The notes: generated from the sequence alone by a model not told the origin. DNA of 64,000 nt from Diplonema japonicum (GCA_964019335.1 OZ025663.1:558001-622000); one strand, 5' to 3'. Shown: positions 43,911 to 55,838, counted from the stretch's first letter. Numbers and translations are program-made.

Positions 43911-45218
43911 ATGAATATGGAGGAAGATCTGTCAGCCCAGGCGGGGGAGATCGCAGAGGCAACGAAAGCGATCCTGGAAGGACTCAAGGAAGTGCACGAG
44001 AGCGAGAACAGGGCTGTATGGACTAGCGGTGACATGTGCACACACTTGAGACACGGAAGCGGGATCGATGGGTTGGGGCGACTAATCAAGAAAGTGGAGG
44101 GGGAGATGATGTTTGCGAGGAGCATGGCAAATAACGAGGTAGAGAGTACACTTGCACGTGTTAAGTCATCGAACCTAGGTGTGTACGAAGGGGTGTTGAA
44201 AGTACTTCAGGAGGAGGTGGGGGGTGTGGTGGGGGTTCAGAGGACCTTCTCGAATGAGGAGAAACTTTGCGTCGAAGTGGATGTCGTGGCTGGGAACGGT
44301 AGTACATGGATCAAGGTGAAGAGCATGAACAACAGGAACATGAAGGACGTGCTGCAGGGCAAGGGGAGGTACGGAGAGCGTTCAGTCATCGAGCTTGCTG
44401 CAGACATGATGGAAGTGGCCGAGGCAAACCCCGTGAACTTCGGTGTCGCAAACTGCTTCATCGTCTTCATGGTGGACATTGATATGAGCACAAGGAAGGC
44501 GATGGAGCTATCGGGTGTTCGCACTCTGCTCATCGATGAGATCCATGAGATCACAACTGCGCACAAGTCACTGTCGCCAGAGGAACAAGCACTGAAAGAA
44601 CTTGCTGAGGAACTAGGCGAGGGAATGGATGAAGACGATGAGCCCAGTGACGAGTCCTCCAGTGGCATGGCCTTGAACCCGCTGTATGTGCAGTCTGTGA
44701 ACCTAGATGTGACTGCTTTGTTTGCGTTGACTTCTGACCTCACCAACGGCAACAATATGTACGATTTCCCCTCTCACAAGGTGCTGAACGGGCAAGCTGT
44801 TGACGACCGCAAGCGGCCCGTCCTCCCCGTCCTGACCGCGTACTTGGCAGGGAAGCGTATCTTAATTTGCGAAACCGCATTGCGGGAGTTCCAGAATATC
44901 ATCAAGCAGGTTGCAGGACCCGACGAGACGCAGCGTGCCGAAGAGCTGCTGAAGCGATGCGTCATAGTTGCTGACCAGCCCACTGAGAAGAGCCTCAAGC
45001 TTGTCGAGTCGGGACGGATCAAGCAACGCCAGAAGGCCATATTCGGAACAGGTGACTATCACCGTGCTGTCACCATCACTGCCAACGTGCAGTTTGTGCA
45101 AGCAGCCATCGATCAAAACGCTGGTTTCACTGTTTTCGTTCATGCAGCACGTGCTCTGACAGAGCGGAAAAGACACAAAGACGGTGTACACACTGACTCA
45201 GTGGGATGTGATTCATAG
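43911..45218 (+). CDS. UPF0415/C7orf25 (DUF1308) homolog
   Basis: SSNL, VDVVAGNGSTWIKVK, VNLDVTALFALTSDLTNG, IFGTGD...TITAN..FV.AA..Q...VFVH.ARALTE.K. Confidence 0.85.
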   Translation: MNMEEDLSAQAGEIAEATKAILEGLKEVHESENRAVWTSGDMCTHLRHGSGIDGLGRLIKKVEGEMMFARSMANNEVESTLARVKSSNLGVYEGVLKVLQEEVGGVVGVQRTFSNEEKLCVEVDVVAGNGSTWIKVKSMNNRNMKDVLQGKGRYGERSVIELAADMMEVAEANPVNFGVANCFIVFMVDIDMSTRKAMELSGVRTLLIDEIHEITTAHKSLSPEEQALKELAEELGEGMDEDDEPSDESSSGMALNPLYVQSVNLDVTALFALTSDLTNGNNMYDFPSHKVLNGQAVDDRKRPVLPVLTAYLAGKRILICETALREFQNIIKQVAGPDETQRAEELLKRCVIVADQPTEKSLKLVESGRIKQRQKAIFGTGDYHRAVTITANVQFVQAAIDQNAGFTVFVHAARALTERKRHKDGVHTDSVGCDS

Positions 45219-45247
45219 TGCTCTTTCAAACTGCTTCATTTATTTAG

Positions 45248-48200
45248 ATGGCTTTCTTTGCCAACCCTCAACCACCATCAAAAGGGGGCGTTCGAATGCG
45301 ATCGGGAGGGAGGGCAACAGGGGCAGCCCCGAGGGGCAGGGTTCGGACAGGGTCAACCCCGCGAACAAGCATTCCCAGAAGACAGTCGACAGGCAGGGAG
45401 TCGACAGGAAGGGAGCCGACGAGAAGGGAGTCGGGTGAAGCGAATGAAGGAAACTGGTCGACAAGGGCAGTGAGAGGTGCCCCTGTAAGGAGGGTGTCCC
45501 AGCCGCGCAAGAGGAGCAATGCATCGTCTCCAGGAACGCCGAAGCGTAAGGGTTCTGGAAAACGTGCTTATTACAATAGGATGACTTTGGCGCAGTTTGC
45601 TGAGTTATACAACACGTTGGAAGAGCTCAGGAAGCTAGACGTTGAGAATGCGGAATCGGTGGACAGAGGGCACGTGGTCAGCAGCGGACGGGAGAAGACG
45701 TGCTACAGAATTCTCAAAAGCTTCGGTGTGAGCAAGATCGAAAACATCGAGGACGAGATCAAGTCCGTGACAGCGAAGGAGCTCGAGATACGGACCACAG
45801 CATTGAAGGACAAGGACGAGCCACACGACGCGCTCGTTAATTGCAGCAAAGCATTGTTCAAAACTGACGACTTGATGTCTCTGTCGCTGAACGACTACTA
45901 CCTGCTGACAGAAGTTACCTCGCACAATGCGTTTTCGCCTGTACTGCACTCGAACAACGTAGAAGCTACTCGAAAGATGTCATCGGTGTCTGAGAATAGT
46001 AAAGTCTCTCTCCCTTCGGCCGAAAGCAGTAGTAAACTAAGCTTCACTACCCACAAGGCCACCAGCTGTGTCTTTGCAGATAGCAACTACGTTGTGTGCC
46101 ACGTGCACAACTTGTTCGCGAATGGCAGCAACGTTGCGGTGCTGAAGAACATCTGTGACGTGGCGGGTTACCTATTCCGCAGAGTGCTTGTGGTGCCACA
46201 GGAGCTCACGTCGATCACGCTCATCGAGTACTTATCCTCCTTCATGAACTACCGCAAGTACGGCATCAGTGTTGTTGTCCTAAACGTCTCTCTTGCTGAC
46301 CCCCAGACGCTAGGCCTCTGCAGGTACCTCCAAAAGGTGCGCAACAACGTGAACTTTGTGCTAAACTTCAACAATCCCATTGCACCCCTTATATGCTACC
46401 CCCATTGCATGTATTTGCAGACGGTTGACGATGCGGCCCTGAAGAGCATGTCTGCTGCGTCTCTTGTTGTGGACACGAAAGCGCTAAACAAGCTTCGGAA
46501 CGAAGCACGGAAGGGCCGTTCCTTCAGAGCGATCGAGTCGATACCACAACAACCTGCCGTCGAGATAGTCACAAGCCACCCCCTGTGCAAAGAGGTGTCC
46601 ACGGACTCAAAAAAGAAGCTCTTCGATGCAATGCATAACGGTCGTTATGAAGAAGTTGCGCTAGCGATGTCTGTGCTGCCTGTAGGTGTGCTGAGAGGGT
46701 TCTGCTCTGAGATGCTAGTTGTGGTGGTGGACGCATTGGCGGACAGGTCGGTGCCGCAACAACAGAGGGGCCACGCATTGCGGGTACTGCTTTTCTTAAT
46801 GAGGGAGGTCGGAAGCCCAAGGCATGGCAGTGTTCTTGAGAGCATAGAAGAAGCAAAAGAGACCCTCCCTATAGCAGACGTCGCTCAGTGTCGGTACAAC
46901 CTGCTGCAGCATGGGCATGCAGCAAATGATCACAATTACGACCTGTCGAAGATGCGGCTGATCAAGGTGGGGACAACTGTTGAGAACATTGTTGCGCTGT
47001 GCCGTGCTTTAGAACGCACGGCACCTGTTTTGGTAGAAGGGGCGACGGGGTTGGGTAAGACAGCTTCCGTGTGCGATGCCTGTGCTGTGTTAGGCCGGAA
47101 GTACGTGCGCTTCAACCTGTCTGCCGGTGTCACCGTTGATGACATCTTAGGCAGGGTACAGCTCAACCCCGACAGCCGCGGGCTGACCTCTTACACCGAC
47201 GCTTACGTCAACGGGCATGTCCTGGTGCTGGACGAGTGCAACCTTGCTCAGGAAGAAGTTCTGTCCCTCATCGAAGGATCTCTGGACACGGGAGAGCTCG
47301 TTACCAACACAACTCATCTGGTGCGACATAAAGACTTCAGGCTGGTCATCACACAGAACCCCACAGCAGGCATGTTTAGCGGGAAGAGAGAAAAGCTATC
47401 CGACGCCTTCTTATCACGTTTCCGGCGTGTTCAACTTTCTCACCTCACCCGCTGCGAGCTAGACATCATCGTGCGGTCCCTCCTGAATGTCGAGCAAAGC
47501 GACAAGGACGGCGCGAACATGTGTGAGAACATCGTCTGCATGCATCTCGCTATGGAGAAGGTCATGTTGGAGGAGGACAACCCTTTGTCTGTCGTAACGT
47601 TGCGGGACCTGCTCTTCCTCTGCACCAGCAAAACGGGGCTTCTGTACCGCGCTTATGTTATCTACTGTGGAAGGGTTCTATCGCCGACTATCAAAGCACT
47701 CTGTTTGAAAGTGATAGAGAAGTATTTGTCCAATGGGAGGCGCGGTGCAACCTCACTTCCAAACATAAAGGGGTACCCTGCTGTGGGTACCATGGGGAAC
47801 AACGGGTGCATTGCGACTGTAAGGGTACATAACTTGTGGCGGTGTTTAGATGTGGCTATGGGAATGGGGCGGCCAGTCCTAGTAGTGGGGGAAGACGGGT
47901 GCGGGAAGAGCTGTGCGGTAAAGGCTTTTGCGTTACATGCGGCATCGAAGAGGGGACAGGGTGGGACTGTAGCTGTTAATGTGACTGAGGACACTGACGC
48001 AGGACAGCTCATCGGACAGTACACACCCACGAAGGATGGAGAAGGAGACGATGTGGTGAGGTGGGTAGACGGTGCCGTGGTGCGCGCAATGAAAACAGGA
48101 CGTATCCTGCTTCTTGACGATATCCTCGCTGCGCCCCCTGTCGTAGTCGAGCGGCTCAACTCCGTTCTTGAGGCGACACCCGAGTTGCTCATCTCCGAGA

Positions 48201-51200
48201 ATGACGCCGACGCGCACATCACGGCAAAGCAAGGCTTCCAGGTGCTCGCCACTGGCAACATCGGAGCTATCAAAAACATCTCCCCTGCTCTCGCCAACAG
48301 GTTCGTCGTTGTGGTTATGGACTCACTGACGCCCAGTAGCATGCCGCACGAAATAAACACACTGCTGGAAGGCAGCGGTTTCAAGGGCAAAGATCTTGAC
48401 TCTGCAGCACAGTTTTGCCAGGTCCTCTGCAAAGATCAGCTAGACATTCGTTCCATTACCAGGGTCCTCAAGAAGGCCGACACGCTTGATGCGTTGAAGA
48501 AAGCCGCCATCAGTATGTACTCCGGTGGGTCGTGGTTCGGGCTGTCGAACAGCAAGCTGCCACCCTCGTTGCTGTACCCGCAGAAATCTGTGTCTTGGTG
48601 TCTGGAGTCGCACATCCCTGTGCTTCTGATCGATGAAAGGAGTGAATGGGACGTAGGTTCCCTGCTGGACAGGGAACACGCCAACATACTGTGTACGTCA
48701 CTGTCGCAGGTTGCAGAGTGGTGGGATGTTACTCTGCCTAAGTCCAGAGGCGTAATGAAGATATCTGGCCCCTTGCACGATGCAGTGACTGAAGGTTGCC
48801 CTCTGCTGCTTCAAGATTACCACAACCTCTCACATTGTCAGATGGCTGAATTATCAGCCCTCCTGGACGGACGCGAGCGTGAGGGTGTGGCATGCCACGA
48901 GAAGTTCTCCGTCGTCGCCACCTGCACCTTGCAAGGTCTTCGCACCATCCCAGAAAGATGGCGGCGTATGTTTCATGAAATTGTGCTACCCCAGCCTACC
49001 GCCGGCGACTACAAACACTACCTTTCTTCTGCTGGCATGGATGATGCCATTCGTGAAGTCTCGGAGGCGGCTGCACGGTTGCGAGATGTGGTACCTATCA
49101 AGATGAACCTGGAGCTGTACAATAAAACAAATAAGCGCGTCAAGCTTTTCATGGGCAACAACTACACCTTGGAAAACTGGGGGCTTGTCCTTGCCTCGTT
49201 GTTCAGTACCTACCCGAACATAACAGGGATCCTGCAGCATAACAGCGTGCTCACTGACAGTGTGTTGAAGAGATTAAGCGCCACCCCTTCCATCACAAGG
49301 GAAGGAACGATGATTTCTTTTTCTGGGCAGGGACTGCGGAGCAAGGTGAACGTCCCATCACGCGGTGACGACTCGAGGTTTGCACTATTTGTGATGAGCT
49401 TGCCGCAACCGGTTATAGCGGCTGTTGTTGCCATGGCACATGCAGTGTGTGCCGGGGAGACACTTGTCCTGGCAGGACCGTCGGGGTACAAGAGTTTTGC
49501 AACGGAAGCATACTTCTCGATCATAGAGGGCGAACATGAAGTGGTGCACATGACTTGCGCAACCGACAGTCATGAACTGCTTGGGAGAATAAGCCCGTTC
49601 AACAGGCAGGACTTCGAGGAAAACGTGAACAAAGAAGTAGCGTTAGTGTCGGGAAAGACGGGAGACAACATCAACGAATACGTGGAAAGCTTGCGTAAGG
49701 CTGTCGAAGAGACGAAAGGCACGTCGACAGTGTTTGCTTGCAAGGACGGTGCGGTGACGGCTGCCATCAAAACAGGGCGGGGCGTTGTATATGAACACGC
49801 TAACCTTGCAGGACAGAACGTTCCACGCGCAATGACGGACTGTTTAGTAAGCAGGAAGCTGCATCTCGGGATCGTGCCGGGTTCGGGAAGGAGCCACTTG
49901 TCATTCAGTGTCCCACAGGTCATGATTTACAGCTGTGCACGCACTACGACTCATCCTCCTGGCTATACACAGCTGACTGTCTACAACTGCAACCCTTATA
50001 CAGAAGACGAAGTGAAGACAGTCCTTATGACGTCCCTCAACCACGGTACCGACGAAGAGAAAGACGAGCTGACTACCGCCATGTACAAGCTCTGCCCCAG
50101 CCAGAGTCTTAGGTCGGCCATTCGGTGGGTTACCTTTGTGAACAACTACCCTGTGACCACCCTGTCTCAAAAACAGGTCCTCATATGTGGATATGAGATG
50201 CTGTTCAAGAAGAATGATGCCAAACGGGGCAAGCTGGACTACCTCGCTGAGCTTGGGTGGGACAACGTGGCGATTGAAGCCCCGTCGCCTAGGAGCTTGC
50301 ACACAATGCACGGGCGCATACATTGCTTGTGGAATTTGACGAACCTCGCCGATGTCGAGTCTAAGCTCAAGGACTGCGTGCTCAGCAAATCTCTTTGCAA
50401 GAATTTGGCACGTGTGCTAGCTGCATCGACTCTGTCGATCCCTCTACTTCTTGAGGGGTCACCTGGAATTGGGAAGGGCTTCGTGGTGGAGCAAGCGGCT
50501 TCTCTGGTGGGGGCTGAGTTCAAAAGAATCCAGATGTCGTCAGGTACAACCGTCGAGCAGCTGTTCGGTACCACAATGCCGATGGTCAAGGAAGGGAAGC
50601 ATGTGTTCGAGTTTCGAGATGGGGCCATCTCTGCGGTGCTTAAGAAAACAAGTAATACATGGGTCCTCCTTGATGAACTCAATCTGGCTCCCTTCGAGGT
50701 GCAACAAGCCCTGATACCCATATTGTCCAGCGGTAGCCCGCGTGTTCGTTTCTTTAGCGCTGTCAACCCTGTTGAGGTTGGAGGCGGTAGGACTTATATC
50801 CCGGCGTCTCTGAAAGAGTACTTCGCGATTATAACGTTAGCTGAGCTTGACAAAATGGAAGTACTGGACGTGGGCAGGGCGAAGTTGGCGAAGGCCTACC
50901 TCCCCGAAAAGCAAGTGGGGGAGATCCTCTGTGTGTATGAAATGGTGCGCGAGGCCGTGCAGAAGAAAAAGGTTGGAGAGGGCGACGAGCTGTTCAACAT
51001 CCGCACCTTGGAGAAGGTTGCCCTGCTGATGGAGGCATCGAAGCTGGATCCCGCCAAGAATGAGGGCGATTTCTTGCGGTACTGCCTCAAGGTGCTGGAT
51101 GTGGTATTCGGGTGTGGGTTCAGCTCAAAAAGCGATAGGACAAAAGTAGCAGAGATCATTAGAGAAGCGGCTCCCTCCTTAACTGAAGGCGTGGAGGTGT

Positions 51201-54200
51201 CCGGGGGCGATATTGAGATAAAGGATAACGTGGTCAATTTTGATGGGGTGAAGTTCGAGAGGGGCGTCGTCGGCGCAGAGAAAGGGTGTGCTATGTCATC
51301 AGAGATGAAGAGGAGACTTATTCTGCTCTCGGTTGCTAGCAGCTCTTCGTTATGTGTGTTGCTTGAAGGCCCTACCGCAAGCGGCAAGACGTATCTTGTG
51401 AAGGAGTACGCTCGCATCTGCGGGCGGGAGCTGAAGGTCATCACCATGACACCTAACATCGAAGGTAGCGACCTGATCGGGTCGTGGACGCCTTTCAAAT
51501 ACTCCGAGCGCTCAGTCTTCAACGAACTCCTCATTCTTTCCATGCAGACCGACGACACACAAGTGATGAAGGCTCTGAAGTCTGCTCTTGAAGAGCCTAG
51601 CAGGGAGGCCTTGAGCGGGTTGTGCGATGCAGTCGCTAAAATATCTGATGTGAAGAGCAAAGAAGCACAGCGTGTGAAGGACCTCATCACAAAGGTCGGT
51701 GAGGGGATCTGCTTCAGATTCACGATGTCGCGGCTGCTGAAAGCGACTTTGAATGGGGAGTGGGTGCTGTTGGATAATGCCGATTGGGCACCGCAGGAGG
51801 CATTGGAACGCTTGAATTCCTTGCTTGAAGCAAACAGCAGTCTGAGCTTGCTCGAAATCAACGGCGAGGAACGCACACTGCTGAAGGGTGACGGGATCCA
51901 CCCAGGCTTCCGTTTGTTCATGACGACCAATCCTGAGAGGAAGCACGCAACGAGGATGTCGCAAGCCCTTCAGAACAGAGTGATCAAGATCAACTTGCAG
52001 GGAATGAGCCCTGTGCACATGATGACGGGACCTACAAAGCATGAACAGGTCGCGCTCACTTTCTACAAACATGTGCAAATCAAGCAAAGCATGACCTGCA
52101 GGTCTGTGTTGCGGTCGCTGTCGAGTTGGTCAGAGACACACGACCTTGCTGTGCTGTGCGACAGCCTCATCTTGGATCACACACCCGCGCTGCCTGATGT
52201 GAAGACTGCACAAAGCGCTCATGGCGAGGCGTTGAGGAACATCTTATCCGACTTGTACACCTTCGACAGCGATGACGAGGATGACTGCGGAGTGGACGAC
52301 GAGGCAGAGGAGAGCGAAAATATCAACAGGCCTGTTGAAAGAGTGCAAAGCACCGGCCTCCCAGTACACTCGGTATCTGACTGGATGGACCCAGAGATGG
52401 AAATGCCTGGCATTCATGGTGGTGAAGAGCAGGTCACGGCCGTTGATGGACTGGATCTTGTATCAGAGTGGAACATTTCGAACCTCAAAGAAGCCTCCAC
52501 CTCTGGGTTGGACAGTAGAAACGCTGACTTCATAGTCTCCCACAGCAAGGAGGGTCTTTTAAGCTTCGGGCAGACTCTTGCTTCTCTGTGGCGGTGCAAA
52601 GCAGGCGGTGTGATTGAAGAGTTGGTGAATAATCTGGTTTCCCCTGAAGGTTACAATAAGTTGGACATAATAAGCAAGGTGTGCGCGCAGCTCGATGAGT
52701 CCCTCGCGGGCTCGTACCCGAATCTGACCCCGATTCACCTGCTAGTGATGAAGATATACACCATGGAAGGGCCTGATGTCGACCGCATGATGGGGTTCCA
52801 AAACGTGCCTGTTTTTGTTAAGGACCCGGAGGGATGGAAAGCGTACAAGCAGCAGTTCAAAGGAAAGCGGAACAGCCAGGTGTACACAGAGATCAACACG
52901 TCTATTAGAGTCATTCACACTGCGGGTAGTGGGGTCGAGAAGGTCGAGGCGCATGCGCTATTCGAAAAATGGGTGAAGTTTGCCAGCGTGCTCATCTGCA
53001 TCGGTGACGTGATGACCCCCACAACGCTGTTCAGGAGCGTGAAGGGGTTGAGTAGCAGTACGGTGCAAAAATACCGGGGGATGAAGCAGGGCGATTTCGA
53101 AGGATGGGCGGCACCAACATCTACCTCCAGAAAGATAGGTGTAGACAAGGCTTTCGTGGGAGACAGGGATGATTCAGTGAAGTTCCGAATCCACAACGTG
53201 ACACGTGGTGTGTACCTGAAGGCCGTCAGCGCGTACCCTGAAGAAGAAGAAGTCTTGCTACCGCCATTCACGAGCCTAGAGGTCATTGCAGTCGGTGAGG
53301 CCGACGGCATCACTACCGTAGATTTCAAATGCACGGGCTCCGTGTGCTGGGACAACCCCCACCTCCGCGGCTTGTTGTTACAGGCCGTCAACGACGCAAG
53401 GGACTCAAACAGAAGGCTGAGGAAGATGAACGGCGAACCACAAGAGGAAGAGGTAAAATTGAAGGAGTTCAAATACGAGCCCCTGGTTCCCATAGAGGAC
53501 GCTCCCGTCAAGCAGGGAAAGGTCTTCTGCACGCAGGACACGATAAAGCTCGACTACACGGTACCCATGGAGGCATCGCAGTTGCTTCCAACGGGAAAGA
53601 AGCACCTCGACAGCCTCAGAAGCACACTTGCTCAAGTACTTCCGGAACTCGACGATGGATGGAATATGTTGACATCAGGGCTTAAGCCGAGTATCAAAGA
53701 TGCGGTGCAAGGGTTCGAGAGGCTGCTGACGCCTAACGCTTTCACTCGGATGCAGGCCTCGTCGCATGGGACGTCGCTGTACATCCCAGGCCTCATCAAG
53801 GCCATCACAACGAACTTCACATATAACAAGGTGTTTGCGTCTAAAACAGCAGGAGGCAAGAGAAACTACTCGGTCGTTGTGGCTTTTGATGCTTTGCTTT
53901 CCAAAAAGGGGACGCCCGTAGTGCACTACCAGCTTGTGGACGTGATTGTGCGTGCATTAGGCGCGCTCGACGTGCCATGCACTGTAGTGGTGTATAACAG
54001 TGAGGATATCTTCATCGTGAAGACAGCGGATGACAAGTGGGACAGAACTGCGGTGACGGCATTCAGGCTGGCAGCTGCGAGGTTTGTGGAGGGTGAGAAC
54101 AGCCACGGATGGAAAACGGCTTGCAAGATAGCACTTGAGGTGCATGCACTGCGCCGTTACGCGTTCGTCTTGTCAGAGGGGAGCACCCCATGGAGCGACC

Positions 54201-55554
54201 CTGAAGTGACTAGTGCCATTGCATCTGCAGCCTCTTCAGGTGTCCATGTGGTTGGGCTTGGGACAGACCTGTCCATCCACTCCGCCTTCCCCACGTCGCT
54301 GTCCCTTCCAGGACACGCCATGTTGGGAGCAGCGCTTATGAAGCATGCCGAAGGTGAGGTTGAGCATCCTTCTGTGAACGAGGCAAAACCACAAAAAGCA
54401 CACACACAAAGGGAGATAACACAACTGCGGGAGGTCCTCGCTGCTAAGGAGGCTCTCTTGCGTTCTGCGTTAGGTTCGCAGCACAATCTATTGAGGTCAA
54501 TTAGAGCGTCGGACTTACAAGAAATCAGCTTTTTAAAAACGCCTCCTGCGGATCTCGCAAAGCTAATATCAGCGATAGGCATCCTTTTAGGGTCGAAGAA
54601 CAAGGTGAACGTGGCGCAAATCTTAAAGTTTGACACGGACTCGCTGACGCCTGAAATGATCAAAAGTGCAGTGGATTTAGTAAGAGATGTCGCCATGGAT
54701 AGGATGAAGAAGATATCCTCTGGTGGTGCCATGTTACTCGAGTACCTCATGCTTCTTGAAAACACGACGAACGCACGTCACGAACTGGCTGCAGGGAAAC
54801 AAGAGCTGCAGGCAATGGAAGACCAACTGTTGGAATCGACGCTGAAGGTGAAATCTCACGTCGCTCAGGGTGTCGCCCTTGTCGAGAAACACGCTGCTGA
54901 CGGGAGCAGAACGCAGTACTTGAAAGTGGCGAAGAGCATTTGTGATACTCAACTTCTGGATAGACTGGCCGGGACGTACCTGTTCCCTACAGCGACAACA
55001 ATGCAGAACGCACTGCTATTTGAAACAGGGCCACCGGTGAAGGAGGTCAGCCAAGATTTGCTGTTAGAGGTATGCATGAGATCAGGGAATATTCACAAAT
55101 CCGCAGATGATAAGGTCTGTACAGTTTTTAAGCTCTCTTGGGAAGAGTGGTTTCCACCCTGGAAATCTGAGACTGGGATCGCAGCTGTCGCATGTGTGTT
55201 ACTCATATGCTGCTTCGAGTCGGGCGCCACTGCCCAGCGACACTGCACCTGAGGCGCAACGAAGCAGCGCAGCGATTGATGGCACCGCCTGTGACCTTTG
55301 GGAAATTGGACAGTGGCTGAAGTCCGTTCAGTGGAACCCCATCGAGTCCCAATCCCTTGTCGACATCCTCCAAACGGTATGCCCTTTGTCGTTTTTTTGT
55401 TTTTGTTTTTGCCCGCATTATCACTCAGAGTGACCCCGTCGTGCGTAAAGACGGTGCTTTCAGAGCGTTAACCATGCGAAGCCCTGATGATGGTGATGGT
55501 GGTGGTGGTGGTGGCAAGAAAAGTAAAAAGCATTCATCTAAAAAGAAAATATGA
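45248..55554 (+). CDS. Giant midasin-like AAA+ protein with ADP-ribosyltransferase, vWA-like, dynein stalk/MTBD-like and pseudokinase domains; exons 45248-55069, 55107-55376, 55429-55554 (~3405 aa)
   Basis: Walker A motifs GATGLGKT (47039), GEDGCGKS (47888), GPSGYKS (49475), GSPGIGKG (50456) and GPTASGKT (51368), plus one degenerate module near 48600. ART motifs LFRS, TSTS and EEEEVLL. Midasin-type pre-vWA motif. Dynein MTBD-like DLQEISFLKTPP. Spliced kinase-like APE, DLWEIG and DPVVR. Confidence 0.85.
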
Positions 55555-55838
55555 AAAGCTAGAAGATTAAGAAAGGAAGGGGAGGAAGATAACCGCCAGG
55601 AATGGCGTTGTTTTTACTGCCGCCGTTTTCCCTTTCCTGTTGTTTGTTTTCCCGGAAGAGAAGATGAAGGAGGTGTTCTGGTCACCGTGTAGAGTGTACG
55701 CAGCGGATTTACAACCATTCCCTCTTTCCTCCTCCTAGAGTGCCTCCCCACAACCTGAGACAGAAATCGTTCATTCCATCCCCCCCCCCCCCCCCCCCCA
55801 GTTAAATGTACACGCAACCCACGCAGGACAACAAAGAG

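Follow-up and report, generated by a model that had tools for sequence, protein, structure and literature searches.

The window analysed here, a 64,000-nucleotide stretch of the Diplonema japonicum genome (GCA_964019335.1 OZ025663.1:558001-622000, whose numbering and plus strand apply to all features below), carries at 45248..55554 one expressed gene in which a ring of six AAA modules, an ADP-ribosyltransferase (ART), a VWA domain, a dynein-type coiled-coil hairpin and a C-terminal tail are joined. The predicted product comprises 3,405 amino acids (aa), assuming that translation starts at 45248, and brings together a ring and VWA of midasin type and a microtubule tip of dynein type, with a toxin-type ART in between. 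We read it, with a probability of roughly 0.5, as a midasin paralog acting as a microtubule-docked, ATP-driven arginine ADP-ribosyltransferase. A preliminary description, made from the DNA alone, had placed a midasin paralog with six midasin-type modules, an acidic patch, an ART, a vWA, a dynein-like stalk and a pseudokinase between the same two coordinates, and most of these parts were recovered, some in altered form.

The ring extends over ~46940-52237, where Pfam AAA_5 was matched in five stretches (E 7e-63), and its motif states were compared between the studied protein and six relatives. AAA1 (46940..47767) carries the Walker A motif GATGLGKT and the Walker B motif VLVLDECNL, and every family member has the two intact. 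Its neighbour AAA2 (47780..48547) has GEDGCGKS and ILLLDD (D-D), the P-loop lysine being retained only in the Diplonema-type subgroup. AAA3 (48545..49357), the module that makes up the six in order, is degenerate; its P-loop is missing in every family member and its Walker B is degenerate, so that it was recognised solely by position and a Walker-B-like strand. AAA4 (49370..50347) is also degenerate, with a shortened P-loop (GPSGYKS) and a Walker B without an acidic residue. Walker A and B read GSPGIGKG and WVLLDELNL (D-E) in AAA5 (50360..51247), and GPTASGKT and WVLLDNADW (D-N, aa 2172-2180) in AAA6 (51260..52237). The D-N pair of AAA6, already singled out in the preliminary description as midasin-like, is common to the studied protein and the six relatives, and the AAA6 Walker B of the canonical midasin encoded elsewhere in the same genome, WLVLDNANF, is likewise D-N. 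Judged from this motif, AAA6 can bind ATP, with hydrolysis unlikely.

Among solved structures in the PDB, the best relatives were the midasins Rea1/Mdn1 (302 bits, 4e-89, phmmer), with NorQ next at ~1e-9, and no dynein was returned at E<=0.001 by this sequence search with the ring protein. Within the genome, the studied protein matched the canonical midasin at 229 bits vs ~13 bits for two VWA8-like genes. These comparisons place the ring near midasin and much further from dynein and VWA8. The canonical gene, whose presence in the same genome the preliminary description had put forward as a check, lies at C20:259551-272537, encodes at least 4,329 aa with six GxxGxGKT loops and strong AAA_lid_5 and AAA_lid_7 matches, and continues through a linker of ~2,000 aa into a D/E-rich tail running into masked N's. 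Its MIDAS domain is not visible in the sequence, which is masked after the D/E-rich stretch. In the studied protein, neither the ~1,700-2,000-residue helical linker of midasin nor a long D/E-rich region was found between ring and ART. AAA6 ends at aa ~2330 and the ART begins ~95 residues later at aa 2425, the interval holding the 18-residue acidic patch DSDDEDDCGVDDEAEESE (aa 2340-2357; 52265..52318); both the missing linker and the patch had been described correctly, and paralogy with midasin was borne out by the 229-bit match, the shared D-N and the MIDAS-like VWA. The VWA8-like genes (C36:30011-35530 and C77:285381-290990) encode ~1,850 aa with three AAA_5 each, one with a Pfam VWA match. 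A VWA8 identity, which would imply three AAA_5 and a C-terminal VWA in ~1,900 aa, was considered and rejected, as these two genes have that form and match the studied protein at only ~13 bits.

The ART domain occupies aa 2425-2730 (52520..53437) and scored 27.6 bits against Pfam PF01129 (cut-off 22.3) over aa 2589-2694, with the D. ambulator ortholog scoring 26.9 bits. Its catalytic triad consists of R2596, S2625-T-S2627 and E2666-E-E2668, and this R / S-T-S / E-x-E pattern was invariant in 23 of the 23 ART-bearing relatives of alignment A1. The domain was modelled by AF2 at a predicted local distance difference test score (pLDDT) above 90, and fold matches to the predicted model fell within the R-S-E group at Z 12-15 (Foldseek E about 1e-7 to 1e-6), including HopU1 (Z 14.6), Tre1 (Z 14.2, root-mean-square deviation (rmsd) 2.4 Å over 179 residues) and ART2.2 (Z 12.3), along with XopAI and C3. 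With its motifs intact and its modelled fold of this type, the ART is probably active, and its ExE motif points to an arginine, of tubulin or of a microtubule-associated protein (MAP), as the most likely acceptor. An N-terminal helical extension of ~130 residues on the ART is conserved in the diplonemid family. The ~300-residue ART module itself is present in at least 30 paralogs in the D. japonicum genome in many contexts, examples being the copies at C10:31655-32464, C60:398289-399137 and C54:396872-399813, and is found in diplonemids together with EF-hand, PDZ or SPRY domains. When ART and VWA were searched together, 176 representatives matched at E<=1e-10, the top-scoring of which were matches to the ART module. 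One dinoflagellate member, P0122 from Prorocentrum, is labelled 'Myosin motor domain-containing protein'.

Downstream of the ART, a MIDAS-type VWA domain (aa 2797-3040; 53636..54367) was assigned from structural matches and motif comparison. Its closest matches by VIA were the MIDAS domains of Rea1 (Z 18.1, rmsd 2.7 Å over 201 residues) and human MDN1 (Z 17.9), followed by NorD (Z 16.7), with generic VWA domains reaching at most 13.6. The metal motif is degenerate, reading D2881-A-L-L-S2885 and having Glu in place of the fourth-strand Asp. Stand-alone VWA relatives retain DxSxSM, and most sister giants have lost the motif.

The VWA is followed by an antiparallel coiled-coil hairpin at aa 3047-3198 (54386..54841), identified by profile and by fold, in which a dynein-type microtubule-binding domain (MTBD; 54500-54718) is flanked by the coiled coils CC1 (54386-54499) and CC2 (54719-54841). 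Single-sequence searches with phmmer matched the hairpin to dynein heavy chains at E 0.013-0.3. A profile of the studied protein and its ortholog, aligned by hhalign with 13 dynein stalks of the D. japonicum genome, gave a probability of 96.4% (E 1.3e-9), whereas an unrelated D. papillatum tail used as the control remained below 1%. In the tail model (pLDDT 79.7), five short helices are set between two others. By Foldseek, the top 24 hits listed were all dynein stalks or MTBDs (e.g., 6rzb_C, TM 0.69, rmsd 3.1 Å), and the top six matches of a wide VIA search were dynein at Z 12.0-8.7. A second look by VIA matched the hairpin (model residues 8-160) to 7jtk_C, a Chlamydomonas radial-spoke chain, at Z 11.4, on par with the dynein chains. 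Structure alone does not prove a dynein origin of the hairpin, but the profile comparison does. Both D. japonicum and D. ambulator retain the H1 'PP' motif as well as segment H6. Since the hairpin is positioned after the VWA and not inside AAA4, and its arms are short (~40 residues each), we consider it a tether and not a dynein-style lever; with this correction, the stalk of the preliminary description is confirmed by profile and by fold. The Pfam MT family (PF12777) gave no match to the studied gene, either on exon pieces or in the whole-genome search. Elsewhere in the genome, a dynein stalk match at C24:616134-617201 contains one internal TGA and one TAG, and possibly represents an intron-containing or broken dynein heavy chain.

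Beyond CC2, the model contains a beta sheet and a single helix resembling a kinase N-lobe (aa 3199-3274; 54842..55069, the end of exon 1), arranged beta-beta-beta-helix-beta-beta. This unit (model aa 159-226) was matched by VIA to residues 62-142 of T. brucei AEK1 (Z 5.8, rmsd 2.4 Å over 67 residues) and to PDK1 (Z 5.6). Exon 2 (55107..55376, 90 aa, 46% identical to the P0152 tail) holds remnants of kinase C-lobe motifs, and exon 3 (55429..55554, 41 aa and the stop) a 'DP..R'-like motif before a Gly/Lys-rich tail; across the two exons and the ortholog, HPGN, YSY, APE, DLWEIG and DP..R are colinear. The kinase-like domain spans the introns; each exon of the tail was searched on its own, and the natural D. 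ambulator transcript stood in for the contiguous tail. Aligned by hhalign with 12 kinases of the D. japonicum genome, the tail gave a probability of 34% (P 4e-4), compared with below 1% for the control tail, and a hidden Markov model of D. japonicum kinases scored 6.9 bits on the D. ambulator tail. Exon pieces searched against Pfam at E<=10 gave no kinase match, and the ESM Atlas returned nothing usable for exon 2 and the N-lobe piece. Motif order and modelled fold together lend weak support to a kinase-like tail. If it is a kinase fold, the domain is catalytically dead, with the catalytic Asp missing (HPGN for HRD...N and YSY for DFG; HPS and YEY in D. ambulator). The earlier reading as a pseudokinase is weakly supported, by the modelled N-lobe and the C-lobe motifs, with no match in Pfam.

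That these domains belong to one gene was apparent from the DNA, from an ortholog and from RNA. An uninterrupted open reading frame (ORF) of 3,334 codons occupies 45248-55252, and the true gene extends 302 nt past the stop of this raw ORF, across two short introns near its 3' end, to a stop codon at 55552-55554 in exon 3, giving exons 45248-55069, 55107-55376 and 55429-55554 (ORF, tblastn and RNA contig) and the gene coordinates originally proposed. The introns rest on three lines: tblastn of a D. ambulator isoform, the DNA itself and RNA contigs. Intron 1 (55070-55106) is 37 nt long, reads GTATGC...CAG and was seen in the RNA contigs of runs X8 and X1, while intron 2 (55377-55428), 52 nt with the same GTATGC...CAG signature, was recognised from a length deficit in X8, the frame and the ortholog. 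Consistent with intron 1, the D. ambulator isoform P0152 matches the codons of exon 1 up to 55069 and resumes from 55107 in another frame at 46% identity, mirroring the frame change, and removal of intron 2 restores the match to the C-terminus of the ortholog. The raw ORF hence ends in 60 codons of intron read-through; the first structure model was built on that ORF, and its last 60 residues are to be disregarded.

Run X8 yielded an RNA contig of 10,260 nt that aligned to 49950-55067 and then to 55105-55376; its intron-1 joint, 55067>55105, skips 37 nt and becomes GT..AG with the cut placed +2. Between 55376 and 55524 the contig has 95 letters vs 147 in the genome, a deficit of 52 from which we conclude that intron 2 was removed. 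The spliced contig spans at least 49950-55772, and thus at least the last 5.8 kb of the gene, and carries 4,526 more letters upstream of the aligned stretch, which would reach ~45424 if colinear. This spliced contig supports the single transcript that the preliminary description had sought. An identical intron-1 joint, with 37 nt removed, was present in run X1, from a relative at ~97% identity. Run X1, labelled as another organism, carries the 3' half of the gene (53085-55751) and provides RNA from a closely related organism or strain. No splicing was seen in X3 and X5, which resemble DNA. Across the locus, the DNA contigs of two independent studies were identical. A C run of ~20 bases lies just 3' of the gene (55780-55800), where the X3, X5 and X8 contigs break or pile up and X5 depth rises to 14,283. 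Every ORF of the window exceeding 250 aa is on the plus strand, and the gene sits within an ordinary same-strand array with neighbours of housekeeping type.

The start codon is uncertain, being either 45248 or 45581. The first 111 codons (45248..45580) are Arg/Ser/Gly/Pro-rich, of low complexity and of uncertain coding status, the next Met after the ATG at 45248 is at 45581, and the Met of the D. ambulator ortholog aligns at ~aa 195. Upstream, a complete DUF5614/DUF1308 gene within 43911-45247 ends at 45218, 29 nt before the ATG at 45248. Either untranslated regions are extremely short here, or the giant protein begins further downstream, with 45581 as the next Met. A pyrimidine-rich stretch ending in AG directly precedes the ATG at 45248. 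The N-terminal region that follows (aa 112-560; 45581..46927) is kept in D. ambulator from ~aa 198 (phmmer to P0001), and gave no match in Pfam or by sequence in the PDB.

The combination of AAA ring, ART and VWA forms the core of a diplonemid family represented in at least three genera, plus a Lacrimia fragment. The D. ambulator ortholog is 54% identical, with the same domain order and the same tail. The D. papillatum member, labelled 'Midasin' in GenBank, has a different tail, in which neither MTBD nor kinase signal was found and which served as the negative control above. Flectonema carries two ring-ART-VWA genes, and the core was also found in three ENA assemblies (relatives P0003, P0005 and P0009). 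A second D. japonicum member, at C6:269976-282145, has the same ring, an ART with an intact triad, a MIDAS-type VWA and a SPRY tail; SPRY tails also occur in P0003, P0005 and P0007, with an additional WD40 in P0003. Among the sequences found, the MTBD and kinase-like tail are common only to D. japonicum and D. ambulator. Given that sister paralogs carry SPRY or WD40 on the same ring-ART-VWA engine, the tail looks like a targeting module. Relatives with swapped C-terminal modules, for which the preliminary description had proposed a survey, thus exist, and its remark that no described protein with this architecture is known requires qualification: a literature search for a midasin-like ring with ART, VWA, MTBD and kinase-like domain found no paper, yet the core is not one of a kind.

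Taken together, these features suggest the following course of action for a microtubule-docked transferase. The MTBD hairpin would dock the protein on microtubules of the cortical corset, flagella or feeding apparatus, and the VWA, perhaps with the kinase-like tail, would hold a client against the ring in the way of MIDAS in midasin or NorD on NorQ. The client could then be remodelled or positioned by ATP turnover at AAA1 and AAA5, after which the ART would move ADP-ribose from NAD+ onto it, the acceptor likely being an arginine of tubulin or a MAP. Several observations weigh against this proposal. The six-by-six Smith-Waterman matrix of modules against the canonical midasin was not diagonal, so the ring is termed midasin-like, and neither module-by-module nor positional orthology is claimed for the six. 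The degenerate VWA metal site implies that client capture cannot run exactly as in midasin. Dynein-like allostery is not to be taken for granted, given that no AAA module gives rise to the stalk. The MTBD is shorter by ~12-15 residues at the position of dynein helix H3. In dynein, H3 is one of the tubulin contacts, and its shortening could, on the modelled fold, leave tubulin binding weak or indicate that the partner is something else. The presence of at least 30 ART paralogs in many contexts is also consistent with a role in conflict or signalling. In this proposal, microtubule binding, NAD+ use, the target and coupling to ATP are each inferred.

The main rival, which we hold to be unlikely, is a conflict or immune sensor-effector in the manner of RNF213, where the ring would serve as the switch, the tail modules would sense invaders or damaged structures and the ART would mark or disable the target. 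The ART fold is indeed nearest to bacterial effector and toxin ARTs, its module numbers at least 30 copies in this genome and is spread through many architectures across diplonemids and dinoflagellates, and SPRY, a widespread recognition domain, is among the variable tails. However, PADLOC returned generic P-loop matches only, no signs of induction, rapid evolution or linked defence genes were seen, the gene resides in a same-strand array with housekeeping-type neighbours, and an MTBD better suits a cytoskeletal address. A comparably doubtful alternative takes the protein off the microtubule altogether, with hairpin and tail being protein-protein interaction modules that have ceased to bind microtubules, and the ART acting on itself or on a non-cytoskeletal client (protein, nucleic acid or small molecule) within an AAA-VWA assembly chaperone such as NorQD/CbbQO. 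The missing H3 segment, the proximity of the VWA to NorD, the radial-spoke hairpin scoring about as well as dynein chains and the other tail of the D. papillatum relative, devoid of MTBD signal, are all compatible with it. Set against these are the specificity of the similarity to dynein-stalk profiles, which was not shared by the control tail, and conservation of the H1 'PP' motif and H6 segment in both species.

Two further explanations have little left to stand on. That the studied protein is the ribosome-biogenesis midasin of the organism is highly improbable and already contradicted: although its nearest solved relatives are midasins and its D. papillatum homolog bears the label 'Midasin', the canonical gene occurs at C20, and in the studied protein linker, long D/E region and intact MIDAS motif are all missing and an ART is present. 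Still harder to credit is an artefact in which separate genes were joined by misassembly or read-through, an idea for which nothing speaks beyond the unusual architecture; it is opposed by the single open frame of 9.8 kb, the identical DNA contigs of two independent studies, the spliced RNA contig with its further upstream letters, and the same domain order in transcripts of D. ambulator and other diplonemids.

Diplonemids rank with the most abundant protists of the sea, and the majority of their genes are unstudied. The gene marks a diplonemid family of ring-ART-VWA giants with interchangeable tails. Should the proposal of a microtubule-docked transferase be true, an AAA+ remodeller would feed or position substrates for an ADP-ribosyltransferase within one chain, the dynein MTBD would be a transferable module, and a cytoskeletal ADP-ribose writer unrelated to PARPs would exist; as a precedent, MARylation (mono-ADP-ribosylation) of alpha-tubulin by PARP-7 controls microtubules (PMC7884071). 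Going further, and only tentatively, this may be the first dynein-type MTBD exapted outside a dynein heavy chain, placed on a midasin-derived ring that drives an arginine ART in cis, so that diplonemids would possess an ATP-powered 'writer' of ADP-ribose on tubulin or MAPs whose sister paralogs have been re-aimed by SPRY/WD40 tails.

Two eukaryotic descendants of a six-module MoxR-type ring are known, midasin, which retained the VWA adaptor, and dynein, which acquired the microtubule stalk (PMC3495828). With midasin (Rea1/MDN1) the studied protein shares six MoxR/dynein-related AAA+ modules in one chain, the D-N of AAA6 and the MIDAS sub-type of VWA. Unlike midasin, it lacks the linker of ~1,700-2,000 aa and the long D/E-rich region, is degenerate in AAA3, AAA4 and the DxSxS...D metal motif, and adds an ART, a dynein-type MTBD hairpin and a putative kinase-like tail, in a genome that has a separate canonical midasin. 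Dynein shares with it an antiparallel coiled coil with a small bundle of helices at the tip, the profile similarity and the top fold matches, whereas dynein arms are ~100 residues vs ~40 here, H3 is shortened here, and the dynein stalk is inserted in AAA4 while this hairpin lies between VWA and kinase-like domain. Searches against Pfam found no DHC_N2 linker, AAA_8, AAA_9 or dynein C-terminal domain in the studied protein, in contrast to the C22 dynein, which shows all of them. With the SPRY-tailed paralog at C6 and the members in Flectonema, Lacrimia and D. papillatum, ring, intact-triad ART and MIDAS-type VWA are shared, the metal motif being mostly lost; the SPRY-tailed paralogs differ in the tail, which is SPRY or WD40 instead of MTBD hairpin and kinase-like domain.

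The R-S-E ARTs (HopU1, Tre1, XopAI, C3 and vertebrate ART2.2) have the same R/S-T-S/E-x-E motifs and fold, but are secreted toxins or ecto-enzymes, whereas the ART here sits inside a eukaryotic giant of the cytoplasm. RNF213 (mysterin) resembles the studied protein only in concept, as it too joins an enzyme that modifies proteins in cis to a giant dynein-like AAA+ core; there the enzyme is an E3 ligase instead of an ART, and neither VWA nor MTBD is present. MoxR-clade rings operate with VWA co-chaperones (PMC7159879, PMC3495828), and the NorQ-NorD and CbbQ-CbbO systems accordingly share with the studied protein a MoxR-clade ring and a VWA, that of NorD having the same N-terminal extension. Those rings are homo-hexamers that work with a separate VWA protein in metal-centre or Rubisco maturation, whereas the D. 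japonicum protein has placed six unequal modules and an enzyme in a single chain.

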